Below, one piece after another: positions 42,913 through 47,635 of a stretch of DNA of 64,000 nucleotides. Numbering within the stretch: the stretch's first letter is position 1; the number at the start of each line of letters is the position of its first letter. Source of the DNA: Malacoraja senta. Its lineage: Eukaryota. Where the stretch lies: the NCBI GenBank assembly GCA_038087875.1, contig CM075989.1, positions 9,858,001 through 9,922,000 of the forward strand. Reading direction: 5' to 3'. The notes under the pieces were generated by a model. That model saw only the letters and a program-made list of their open reading frames with translations, searched no databases and had not been told where the DNA came from. The position numbers and the translations under genes were made by a program.

Positions 42913-44478
42913 CAGTGGCTTGCAAAAGTATTCATACCCCTTGAACTTTTCCACATTTTGTCACGTTACAACCACAAACGTAAATGTATTTTATTGGGAT
43001 TTTATGTGATAGACCAACACAAAGTGGCACATAATTGTGAAGTGGAAGGAAAATGATACATGGTTTTCAAATTTTTTTACAAATAAAAAACTGAAAAGTG
43101 TCGCGTGCAAAAGTATTCAGCCCTCTTTACTCGGATACCCCTAAATAAAATCCAGTGCAACCAATTGCCTTCAGAAGTCACCTAATTAGTAAATAGAGTC
43201 CACTTGTGTGTAATCTAATCTCAGTATAAATACAGCTGTTCTGTGAAGGCCTCAGAGGTTTGTTAGAGAACATTAGTGAACAAACAGCATCATGAAGCCC
43301 AAGGAACACACCAGACAGGTCAGGGATAAAGTTGTGGAGAAGTTTAAAGCAGGGTTAGGTTATAAAAAAATATCCCAAGCTTTGTACATCTCACAGAGCA
43401 CTGTTCAATCCATCATCCGAAAATGGAAAGAGTATGGCACAAGTGCAAACCTACCAAGACATGGCCGTCCACCTAAACTGACAGGCCGGGCAAGGAGAGC
43501 ATTGATCAGAGAAGCAGCCAAGAGGCCTATGGTAACTCTGGAGGAGCTGCAGAGATCCGCAGCTCAGGTGGGAGAATCTGTCCACAGGACAACTAATAGT
43601 CGTGCACTCCACAAATCGGGCCTTTATGGAAGAGTGGCAAGAAGAAAGCCATTGTTGAAAAAAAGACATAAGAAGTCCTGTTTGCAGTTTGCCACAAGCC
43701 ATGTGGGGGACACAGCAAACATGTGGAGGAAGGTGCTCTGGTCAGATGAGACCAAAATTGAAGTTTGGCGGAAACCTAACACTGCACATCACCCTGAACA
43801 CACCATCCCCACTGTGAAATATGGTGGTGGCAGCATCATGCTGTGGGGATGCTTTTCTTCAGCAGGGACAGGGAAGCTGGTCAGAGTTGATGGGAAGATG
43901 GATGGAGCCAAATACAGGGCAATCTTGGAAGAAAACCTGTTAGAGTCTGCAAAAGACTTGAGACTGGGGCGGAGGTTCACCTTCCAGCAGGACAACGACC
44001 CTAAACATACAGCCAGAGCTACAATGGAATGGTTTAGATCAAAGCATATTCATGTGTTAGAATGGCCCAGTCAAAGTCCAGACCTAAATCCAATTGAGAA
44101 TCTCTGGCAAGACTTGAAAATTGCTGTTCACAGACGCTCTCCATCCAATCTGACTGAGTTTGAGCTATTTTGTAAAGAAGAATGGGCAAAGCTGGTAGAG
44201 ACATACCCCAAAAGACTTGCAGCTGTAATTGCAGCGAAAGGTGGTTCTACAAAGTACTGACTCAGGGGGGCTGAATACCTTTGCACGCGACACTTTTCAG
44301 TTTTTTATTTGTTCAAAAATTTGAAAACCATGTATCATTTTCCTTCCACTTCACAATTATGCACCACTTTGTGTTGGTCTATCACATAAAATCCCAATAA
44401 AATACATTTACGTTTGTGGTTGTAACGTGACAAAATGTGGAAAAGTTCAAGAGGTATGAAAACTTTTGCAAGCCACTG
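42913..44478 (+). mobile_element. Tc1-family DNA transposon, Passport-like, IR/DR type
   Basis: TA TSDs (42911-42912, 44479-44480). 211-bp TIRs (42913-43123, 44268-44478) with about 7 mismatches. Two TGCAAAAGTATTCA direct repeats in the left TIR. Confidence 0.97.
43292..44260 (+). CDS. Tc1 DD34E transposase, 322 aa, stop-free but apparently with two in-frame deletions
   Basis: Paired-like HTH, GRPPKL, NLS-region ARRKPLL, WSDE, QQDND...(34)...PIE, WPSQSPDLNPIE, GGSTKY terminus. Confidence 0.95.
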   Translation: MKPKEHTRQVRDKVVEKFKAGLGYKKISQALYISQSTVQSIIRKWKEYGTSANLPRHGRPPKLTGRARRALIREAAKRPMVTLEELQRSAAQVGESVHRTTNSRALHKSGLYGRVARRKPLLKKRHKKSCLQFATSHVGDTANMWRKVLWSDETKIEVWRKPNTAHHPEHTIPTVKYGGGSIMLWGCFSSAGTGKLVRVDGKMDGAKYRAILEENLLESAKDLRLGRRFTFQQDNDPKHTARATMEWFRSKHIHVLEWPSQSPDLNPIENLWQDLKIAVHRRSPSNLTEFELFCKEEWAKLVETYPKRLAAVIAAKGGSTKY

Positions 44479-45029
44479 TATCACAATTAAATCTCCCCTC
44501 AGCCGCCTCCACTCCAAAGAAAACAACCCAAGCTTATCTAATCTTTTGTCATGGCTACAATTTCCATGTCCTAACAATACCTTCATAAAGCTCAACACCA
44601 TCCTCTTCAGTGGAATCACATCTTTGTTGTTCTGGACACCTTTTTACTATGTTTTTTACAGCATTGTAATATTTCTCTATGAATGTCCATACAGGCATAG
44701 AATCACACAGGACCGAAACAGGCCATTCAGACTAGCATGTCCATGATGGCCATTGCACTTATTTAGACTGATCTCATTTACCCCTTTCTGGTCCATTGCC
44801 TCTGGAGTCATAAAGGCCCCGTGACCTTTTCTACATCAAAGGTATTAAATAAACTTAAATTGTTAGAGTGCCTGCATTCAATATTATAAATAAATACTGG
44901 TTATTCTTCTGCACAGCAGTGATGATCAAGTAATATATCAGTTCAAATTAATACTGCAATGCTGTCATAACTCGATGGGCAAAGGTGGGTATTGAAATAA
45001 GTCCTCAAAATCTACCATTAATGCCCAGT

Positions 45030-45733: not shown

Positions 45734-46792
45734 CTGCTTCATTAATCATTGTCTTTCTATCATAAGGTCAGAAATTATAATGTTTGTTGATAGTTACAAA
45801 GTTCAATTCCATTCATAATTCCTCACCAAATGGACCAAACCATACCTGAATGCAGAAAGACCTGGACAACAAAGGTTGGTAGGACTTGAGTAACAACAAG
45901 ATATGACAATAGACATCGGCAACGAGAGAAAATTGAACCACCTGCCTTTGATATTCAATGGTATTACCATTTCTGAGAAACATCCCACCTCAACATTCTG
46001 GGTATCGCCATTGACCATAAAATTAACTGGATTAGCCATGTAAATATCAGGTTAATGAGAGCGTTTCTGAGGCTGGTTATACTCTGGTGACTAACTCACT
46101 TCTGAACTCCTTTCCACAATCAACAAGATACAAGTCAAGAGCATGAGGACTCTCCACATGAGGACTCGAGAAGCTCACGCCATCCAGGACCCAGCAGATG
46201 ATTTGATTGCCACCCCATCTACCATCATAAACATGTATTACCACCAAGCCTAAAATCTCTCGCTCTCTATGCAGCAGCACTGAAAGACCACCTTCACCAC
46301 AAACGGTTCAAGAGCTCGCCACCATTTTTTTCAAGTTCATTCTTTCTTTACGTCTGCCTCAATAAATTGGAAATTAAAACAGATGCAAATAATTCTAGGC
46401 ACTTTAAAGATTACTAATCGTCTTATTATATTTTAAGTTTATTCTGGAATAGTTAGGCAGCAAGCCTGAGAACTCTGCAGACTTATCGTCAGGCTTTTTG
46501 GAGCTCAGCTATGAAGCCACCTGGACTCCCATTGAACCAAATTGTTGTGGTTCATCACTCGTTCTCAAGTAGGACCACGACTTAGACCGAGGGGCTTGAA
46601 AGTTCCTTCCATAGGTGTGTCAGAAAGCTGTAGCATTCAGTGGATCTGCATTTCTCTTTTCCTGTTAAGATTCCTCCAATCAAGCTTCCTCATGTGAGCG
46701 AGCACCACCTTTTGCTCTGCCAAATAGTTTGATACAATGCTTATTATTCCAAGTTGTGTGTGTCACTCTTGAAGCTCTTCGTGGAGGTTCTT

Positions 46793-46846
46793 GGGGTGGG
46801 AGATTGCAACCTTCACGTGGTCTGCCCTGTTTCAATGAATGCAATC
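46793..46846 (+). ncRNA. Minimal HDV-like self-cleaving ribozyme fold (this copy has catalytic C->U, predicted inactive)
   Basis: P1 GGGGUGG/CUGCCCU with G1.U wobble; P2 GAUUGCA/UGCAAUC; P3 ACC/GGU; L3 UUCACGU; J4/2 UGAA. Confidence 0.8.
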
Positions 46847-46933
46847 AACCTGGTGTGCACAATGAAATAAGATCAAATAGAACAAGTTGTCCTACAACTT
46901 TGGGCTGTGCACGCCATACGCAAGGAGAAGAAG
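46793..46933 (+). mobile_element. 141-bp non-autonomous retroposon with 5' HDV-like ribozyme and Vingi/Ingi-like CATACG..GAAGAAG tail
   Basis: 10-bp TSD GGAGGTTCTT (46783-46792, 46934-46943). No pol III A/B boxes seen. Confidence 0.88.
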
Positions 46934-47169
46934 GGAGGTTCTTAGAGAGTCTTTGAATCTCTTTTTCTGTCCAACACATGAACAATTGTCCTCAGTCAGC
47001 TCACCATTAAGTAGCTGCTTTGGTATCCTGTCATAAGATATTCTTCTGATATGTCTCGCCCACCTGATCTGTGATTCTTCCTACAATGTGTAGATGCTGA
47101 GGTTTGTCTGATACAGAATCACGTATCTGAAATCTTGTCTTGCCACTTGATCACAGCATGGATTGGGAA

Positions 47170-47635
47170 CAGTTCCATCCAAGAATGCAAGAAATTGTGG
47201 ACGTAAACCAACCTCTCTTCCATTGACTCCATCTACACTTCATACTGCTTCGGCAAGGCCACCAGCATAATCAAGGATGAGTCGCATCCCAGCCACTCAC
47301 TCATCTCCCCATTCCCATCAGGCAAAAGGTACAGAAGTGTGAAAACGCAAACCTCCGGATTCACGGACAGTTTCTTCCCAGCTGTTATCAGGCAACTGAA
47401 CCATCATATCACCAACTGGAGAGCGGTACTGAACTACCATCTACCTCATTGGAGACCATCGGACTATCTTTAATCGGACTTTACCTTGCAATAAAAGTCA
47501 TTCCCTGTATCCTGTAACTGTACACGGCTTGATAGTAATCATGTATAGTCTTTTCACTGACTGGCTAGCAGGCAACAAAAAGCTTTTCACTGTACCTCGG
47601 TACACGTGACAATAATAAACTAAATTAAACAAAAC
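47170..47635 (+). mobile_element. Rex1/Babar-type LINE 3' fragment
   Basis: SIDSIYTSYCFGKATSIIKDESHPSHSLISPFPSGKRYRSVKTQTSGFTDSFFPAVIRQLN plus 3' UTR ending GTGACAATAATAAACTAAA. Confidence 0.85.

Follow-up and report, generated by a model that had tools for sequence, protein, structure and literature searches.

A self-cleaving 5'-terminal ribozyme is a known feature of several kinds of short retroposons. In the R2 SIDEs and in NARTc, a 5' ribozyme of the hepatitis delta virus (HDV) type frees the element RNA from its co-transcript. So-called bipartite non-autonomous LINEs (long interspersed nuclear elements) are known in the RTE, Ingi, Vingi and R2 clades, and Kojima has suggested a 5' ribozyme as the reason for the retention of the LINE 5' end in these elements (PMC5786205). 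All of these elements are short, with a LINE-type 5' end, a 3' end recognized by the reverse transcriptase and no open reading frame (ORF). A likewise short and ORF-less element of 141 bp lies on the plus strand at positions 46793–46933 of a 64,000-nt stretch of the genome of the skate Malacoraja senta (contig CM075989.1, positions 9,858,001–9,922,000; hereafter, the window). We consider it likely that this is an old, inactivated copy of an ~141-bp two-module non-autonomous retroposon of the non-LTR (long terminal repeat) type that is very abundant in skates, whose ribozyme head would free its RNA and which a partner LINE would insert. This reading is carried by the insertion itself, a family of copies with sharp edges, the match to the ribozyme fold and the catalytic C of the family, all of which are observed.

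The kind of element is already known from the R2 SIDEs, NARTc and bipartite non-autonomous LINEs. What is new is the vertebrate host, the combination of a very small size with a very high copy number, and a ribozyme devoid of helix P4. Compared with the bipartite LINEs, the skate element is much smaller and also differs in its genome-wide insertion. Bipartite LINEs share both ends with a parent LINE; there is no such parent for the skate element in the window, so an origin by internal deletion is hypothetical. A search of the full-text literature, with Repbase and Dfam lying outside its scope, returned no description of such an element in skates, sharks or any short interspersed nuclear element (SINE).

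Minimal, P4-less HDV-like ribozymes were reportedly described by Riccitelli in 2014. Nearly 99% of the theta and minimal examples come from Caudoviricetes, in a survey whose eukaryotic part covered the RefSeq 'complete genome' eukaryotes (termed protists) plus human and mouse only (Kienbeck 2024, PMC10879173). Should the family-majority RNA of the skate element cleave, no other HDV-like ribozyme known from a vertebrate genome would come near it in copy number, and it would be a eukaryotic, naturally occurring instance of the minimal form without P4, nearly all reports of which are from gut phages (PMC10879173).

The insertion and its ribozyme-like head

The element is delimited by a perfect 10-bp target-site duplication (TSD). 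Both copies of the direct repeat GGAGGTTCTT (46783–46792 on the left and 46934–46943 on the right) are present in the sequence with 141 bp between them, as had been proposed in a first-pass annotation made from the sequence alone. When the insertion and one TSD copy are removed, the C-terminal ORF2 frame of a minus-strand LINE (46400–47500) remains intact across the junction, running from ...RWARHIRRISYDRIPKQLLNGELTEDNCSCVGQKKRFKDSL directly into RTSTKSFKSDTHNLE... Because the host frame is uninterrupted across this reconstructed empty site, the 141 bp represent a true insertion, which split the ORF2 C-terminal region of an older, decayed LINE. The insertion has a single-copy left flank and, on its right, a repeat that is present in a few tens of copies. 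In the 64-kb window, blastn (word size 7) found no second copy of the element and nothing resembling its tail, the longest match being at most 18 nt. The Vingi/Ingi reverse transcriptase that had been named as the partner is an unsupported guess, there being no related LINE tail in the window.

The first 54 nt of the element (46793–46846) follow the order P1-J1/2-P2-P3-L3-P3'-P1'-P1.1-J4/2-P2', which is that of the nested double pseudoknot of HDV-like ribozymes, and every helix and core segment named in the first-pass annotation is found in the sequence. The 5' strand of P1 (GGGGUGG, 46793–46799) begins with G46793, which would be G1 at the predicted cleavage site; this base is also the 5' edge of the family and position 1 of the two covariance models described below. 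The 3' strand of P1 is CUGCCCU (46822–46828), with T46823 being a decayed CpG, and reads CCGCCCU in the family majority; the 7 pairs of the helix include the G1.U wobble (G46793–U46828) and two more wobbles. J1/2 (GA, 46800–46801) has 2 nt, as in most phage theta ribozymes. The 5' strand of P2 (GAUUGCA, 46802–46808) forms 7/7 Watson–Crick pairs with its 3' strand (UGCAAUC, 46840–46846), which ends the head. Between them lie the P3-L3-P3' core (ACC UUCACGU GGU, 46809–46821), the 3' side of P1.1 (GU, 46829–46830), where G46829 pairs with C46814 of the core to give one G–C pair and U stands opposite U, and J4/2 (46836–46839), which is UGAA here and CGAA in the family, with T46836 at the position of the catalytic C. 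Helix P4 is missing from the head; its place is taken, as in minimal and theta forms, by a 5-nt linker (46831–46835) that reads UUCAA in this copy and UUCGA in the family.

A strict descriptor was run on both strands of the window, a check that had been suggested with the first-pass annotation. It specified G1, 7/7 pairs in P1, at least 6/7 in P2, a 3-bp P3, L3 of the form UYCNCGN, a G behind P1' with G or U as the next base, and J4/2 of the form YNRA, and its single match was 46793–46846. The frequencies of its components in the window give this descriptor a chance expectation of ~4e-5 per window, 1–2 per 3-Gb genome and ~3e-10 for any one given start. Chance is not a credible source of a match that, in addition, begins with the first base after the TSD. 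When pseudoknots are disallowed, the minimum-energy fold of the family-majority head consists of exactly P1 stacked on P3; P2 cannot appear in a fold of this type. Taken as a whole, the 141 nt reach no lower minimum free energy than shuffled sequences do (z = -0.16), a value that is little informative for a molecule whose head is a pseudoknot.

Copy number, edges and majority letters of the family

Public contigs from seven DNA runs of related organisms (A to E, G and H) and one RNA library of organism B, which together make up the eight runs referred to below, were aligned to the region at 80% likeness. Between 10,000 and 17,000 contigs per run were placed on the element, and the summed depth over 46793–46933 amounted to 1 to 9 million, as against 8–50 for the single-copy left flank. 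Summed depth is a poor measure of copy number, and we give the family size as a range: the number of distinct contigs points to several thousand copies, the ratio of depths to about 10^5.

In every DNA run the family has a left edge at 46791–46793 and a right edge at 46930, 46931 or 46933, beyond which agreement drops to about 0.34, as for random sequence. On the right, the ends vary by AAG units and often run on with AAG. The depth, the thousands of contigs and the sharp edges bear out the high-copy retroposon family that had been postulated. Copies had been expected to start exactly at G1, and their edges do fall at G1 within two bases, although not all of them at 46793. Alignments of the family with a start at 46793, 46792 or 46791 occur at ~2:2:1, compared with ~10:3:1 expected for random upstream bases. 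Insertion sites seem to be enriched for T or TT directly 5' of G1; this excess could represent a target preference or an extra T at the 5' junction. In organism H (run X30), the depth at 46871–46906 exceeds that over the first 30 nt by a factor of about three to ten; in organisms D and E, both parts have similar depths. The excess in organism H may come from many 5'-truncated copies, or from other families or a LINE that share the tail.

Organism A showed zero differences across the left junction and is therefore probably the species of the window itself. Contigs of organisms B and C span both junctions, with 8–11 differences on the left and 5–7 on the right. As they bridge both junctions, the insertion is older than the split of these species; the copy at 46793–46933 is an old one, present as the same insertion in two other species.

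The 31-letter words of the element are nearly unchanged in at least seven organisms, and the element is abundant in RNA-library contigs. Both facts could be taken to mean that the copies are retro-copies of a conserved cellular small RNA gene and not a transposable-element family. About 10^4–10^5 copies, each with different flanks, together with a simple-repeat tail, a TSD and the lack of any Rfam family match, speak against such an origin and make it extremely unlikely.

The majority letters of the family bear directly on the ribozyme assignment. The first-pass annotation had regarded four departures of the present copy from an ideal fold as CpG transitions and had predicted C at 46797, 46823 and 46836 and G at 46834 in the family. 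At 46836, the catalytic position, the family does have C, at 85–95% of the (assembler-weighted) depth in the eight runs; it has C at 46823 (77–95% of depth) and G at 46834 (62–84% of depth) as well. The prediction failed at 46797, where the family itself has T and each other letter accounts for less than 3%, which makes the U.G wobble at this place in P1 a family state and not the product of decay. Of the element's 28 TpG/CpA sites, only four depart from the majority letter, and three correct picks out of four would be made by chance with P = 0.005. The explanation by CpG transition holds for 46823 and 46836 and does not extend to all four letters: besides the T at 46797, there is an asymmetry at 46833/46834, with G46834>A at 26–38% versus C46833>T at ~3%, so the A at 46834 looks like a subfamily letter in the linker rather than plain CpG decay. 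With U in place of the catalytic C, the present copy would be inactive.

The listing of variants with at least 3% of depth is complete for the family. In the head it consists of CpG decay at 46816/17, 46823/24, 46833/34 and 46836/37, rare single changes at 46821 and 46825, and G>U at 46837. The latter, found at 4–14%, is the commonest non-CpG change in the head and yields J4/2 CUAA, the state of phage theta ribozymes. All seven DNA runs also contain a subfamily in which 46837–46868 are replaced by ...TAATGCAATCAACYCGACGTGCACAAACRG and which rejoins the family at 46869. It has CUAA in J4/2 and an altered 5' strand of the 3' stem, and is about 2 nt shorter. In organism B, the RNA run (X15) had more of the intact letters than the DNA, with C at 46836 in 95% versus 89% and G at 46834 in 84% versus 72%. 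This excess could be due to better-expressed younger copies or to an assembly-threshold effect.

Likeness to theta and CPEB3 ribozymes

Among the described ribozymes close in design is the bench-tested theta ribozyme no. 1, whose region lengths (7-2-7-3-7-3-7-2-6-4-7; PMC10879173) differ from those of the skate head (7-2-7-3-7-3-7-2-5-4-7) in the linker only. The two have identical P3 strands (ACC/GGU), their L3 loops are one letter apart, and 12 of the 13 letters of the core are the same. The linker in the place of P4 has 5–8 nt in theta ribozymes and 5 nt in the skate head. Other features were compared with 32 phage theta ribozymes, which had been retrieved by a canonical theta core pattern that excludes the skate letters. 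G.U at the G1 pair is found in 21 of these 32 reference sequences and also in the skate head. In all 32, P1.1 consists of two C–G pairs, whereas in the skate head UC faces GU with one G–C pair, and J4/2 is mostly CUAA in theta ribozymes, in contrast to CGAA in the skate family. The pairing in the 32-sequence alignment is 100% by construction, as the sequences were selected for pairing, and is not evidence. The settings differ too: theta ribozymes cleave within 5 nt of the 3' end of a tRNA in phages, whereas the skate element has no tRNA and stands in a vertebrate LINE context.

Two covariance models, R1 and R2, one with P1 + P3 and the other with P2 + P3, were built from the 32 phage sequences and run with filters off. 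Both rank the skate head first in the window: R1 matches from 46793 with 17.2 bits (E = 0.034) and R2 matches 46793–46846 with 16.3 bits (E = 0.24), the E-values being roughly calibrated. As a control, a phage ribozyme from contig L067 had E-values of 5e-5 and 7e-5 under the two models.

This control came from a scan of metagenomes for the skate core, with a pattern of 19 core letters (ACCTTCACGTGGT, 7 free bases, GT, 3–8 free bases, CGAA). The scan returned 71 sites, most of them in an apparent conserved bacterial gene, and the site in L067 was the sole one of the 71 that also forms P1 (7/7, with G1.U) and P2 (6/7). Its G1 directly follows a tRNA-Thr, which makes it a theta ribozyme by position, with the exact skate core. 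The segment in question (1116–1243 of a metagenome phage contig) carries tRNA-Met, tRNA-Thr, a 55-nt minimal HDV-like ribozyme and then a GIY-YIG-like ORF. The core letters of this ribozyme (UUCACGU, GU and CGAA) are the CPEB3 and skate states, unlike those of the usual theta ribozymes. The CPEB3/skate type of core is rare in phages. In the viral contigs of IMG/VR, a CPEB3-type core had one match, which was GC-rich, had no tRNA nearby and was not ribozyme-like.

The consensus of the CPEB3 ribozyme (RF00622) and the skate family have the same L3 (UUCACGU), the same CCCUGU after P3', J4/2 CGAA, G1.U and a P1 starting with GGGG; the GU letters on the 3' side of P1.1 are identical in CPEB3 and the skate head. 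The differences are that CPEB3 has a P4 helix, does not share the sequences of P2 and P3 and exists as one conserved copy in an intron, whereas the skate ribozyme is P4-less and multicopy. The sharing of letters at constrained positions could be due to convergence. It is conceivable, if improbable in our judgement, that the mammalian CPEB3 ribozyme is a domesticated descendant of a ribozyme-headed vertebrate retroposon lineage and that P4-less theta-type ribozymes are in general use for 5' processing among vertebrate mobile elements, instead of being largely confined to phages. As the core letters are those of CPEB3, the origin of the mammalian CPEB3 ribozyme becomes testable by tracing such elements through vertebrate genomes.

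Several points weigh against the assignment of the head as a ribozyme of a mobile family. P1.1 has just one standard pair, and the skate linker departs from the conserved theta linker GUAAYG. The E-values of the theta models are marginal; the copy that was scored is the decayed one. No Rfam HDV-like family reached its threshold in a scan of 156 bases, where CPEB3_ribozyme alone appeared with 9.8 bits (E = 6; gathering score 35), and a scan of 6 kb gave nothing at the element; the HDV-like models of Rfam include P4 and cannot score pseudoknots. The fold rests on likeness to a known design, and the copies resemble one another through common descent, not through selection acting on each of them. 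There are no compensatory changes among the variants with at least 3% of depth, and the family is too uniform for a covariation test. Finally, the depth shares come from collapsed assembly contigs and are weighted by the assembler, so that rare or private variants are under-counted, especially near the ends.

The state of P1.1 and of the linker would also fit a head whose fold is real but which serves mainly as a structured 5' module with weak or no self-cleavage, for example in partner-protein binding, 5'-end protection or as a translation or template-switch signal. There is a precedent in the R2 protein, which binds the 5' pseudoknotted RNA of its element. The positions needed for chemistry, namely the catalytic C, the G1.U wobble and the letters of L3, are however preserved in the family, and in seven organisms the edge of the element lies no more than two bases from the predicted cleavage site. 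We therefore regard a mainly structural role as unlikely and favour a head that would cleave.

Promoter, 3' module and proposed mobility

The best matches of the element to the A-box and the B-box of RNA polymerase III (Pol III) promoters have 3 mismatches each, which is also the number most often seen when 141-mers are drawn at random from the window. ARAGORN detected no tRNA, whether in the copy or in the family-majority sequence, which speaks against a tRNA-derived head, and Rfam gave no tRNA, 5S, 7SL or snRNA match at the element. These results agree with the earlier description of the element as promoter-less. Sharp 5' edges are typical of any SINE, and the family sequence TTCGA at 46831–46835 recalls the core of a B-box, as would be expected of an ordinary SINE with an internal promoter of its own (Pol III or other), whose 5' edge is the transcription start and whose fit to the HDV-like fold is coincidental. 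Against this stand the random level of the A- and B-boxes, the negative ARAGORN and Rfam searches, the chance of ~3e-10 for the fold match at a fixed start and the three family letters that the fold correctly foretold. Taken together, these make an ordinary SINE very unlikely.

The 3' half of the element contains a stem-loop domain (46851–46916) with an outer stem (~46851–46860 with 46907–46916) and an inner hairpin (46884–46900), followed by a tail (46917–46933, ...ACGCAAGGAGAAGAAG) that ends in AAG repeats and in which the copies of the family have their ends, at 46930, 46931 or 46933. The nested 3' stem-loop proposed from the sequence was recovered by folding: 46847–46933 form a long stem with an inner hairpin at -22.7 kcal/mol (z = -2.61), a value equalled by 4 of 200 shuffled sequences. 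The C of the family at 46854 converts a U.G to a C–G pair in the 3' stem, and the most variable 3' position, 46893, lies in the inner loop. The stem-loop and the (AAG)n tail likely form the recognition module for a partner reverse transcriptase. The 10-bp TSD, the (AAG)n tail of variable length among copies, the lack of an ORF and the total of 141 bp complete the description of the element.

With a two-module retroposon as the preferred reading, the 54-nt P4-less HDV-like head would be its 5' module and the stem-loop with the (AAG)n tail its 3' module. For its mobility we infer head cleavage, read-through transcription and a partner reverse transcriptase. A copy lying within a host transcript would be transcribed by read-through; the head would then fold co-transcriptionally and cut immediately 5' of G1, so that it probably trims the element RNA to its exact start. 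The reverse transcriptase of the partner LINE would recognize the 3' stem-loop and tail, and the cDNA would be inserted by target-primed reverse transcription with a duplication of about 10 bp. Having U for the catalytic C, together with two further CpG transitions, the copy in the window could presumably no longer cut. If this scheme is true, a 54-nt head that trims itself and a tail recognized by a reverse transcriptase are all that a promoter-less element of 141 nt needs to reach roughly 10^5 copies. Ribozyme heads could also be used as markers to annotate this class of repeats.

The composition of the window (41% G+C, CpG observed/expected 0.36, no N) is that of a vertebrate genome. Its other mobile elements include, at 43292–44260 on the plus strand, an uninterrupted ORF for a 322-aa Tc1/mariner transposase that is 84–86% identical to Tc1-like transposases of teleosts and Xenopus. 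The exact product of this ORF is not on record, its homologues being mostly from teleosts, frogs or short contigs. A search for proteins translated across copies of the 141-bp element gave zero candidates. The entire 1.6-kb Tc1 element has 94% DNA identity to three copies on an unrelated 19.7-kb ENA contig (L184), which is without any copy of the 141-bp element. The wide host spread of the Tc1 element suggests horizontal transfer. Adjoining it is a second decayed LINE tail (44335–44619, minus strand), an ORF fragment with the LINE ORF2 C-terminal motif ...LGLFSLEWRRLRGDLI..., which appears CR1/L2-like by eye.
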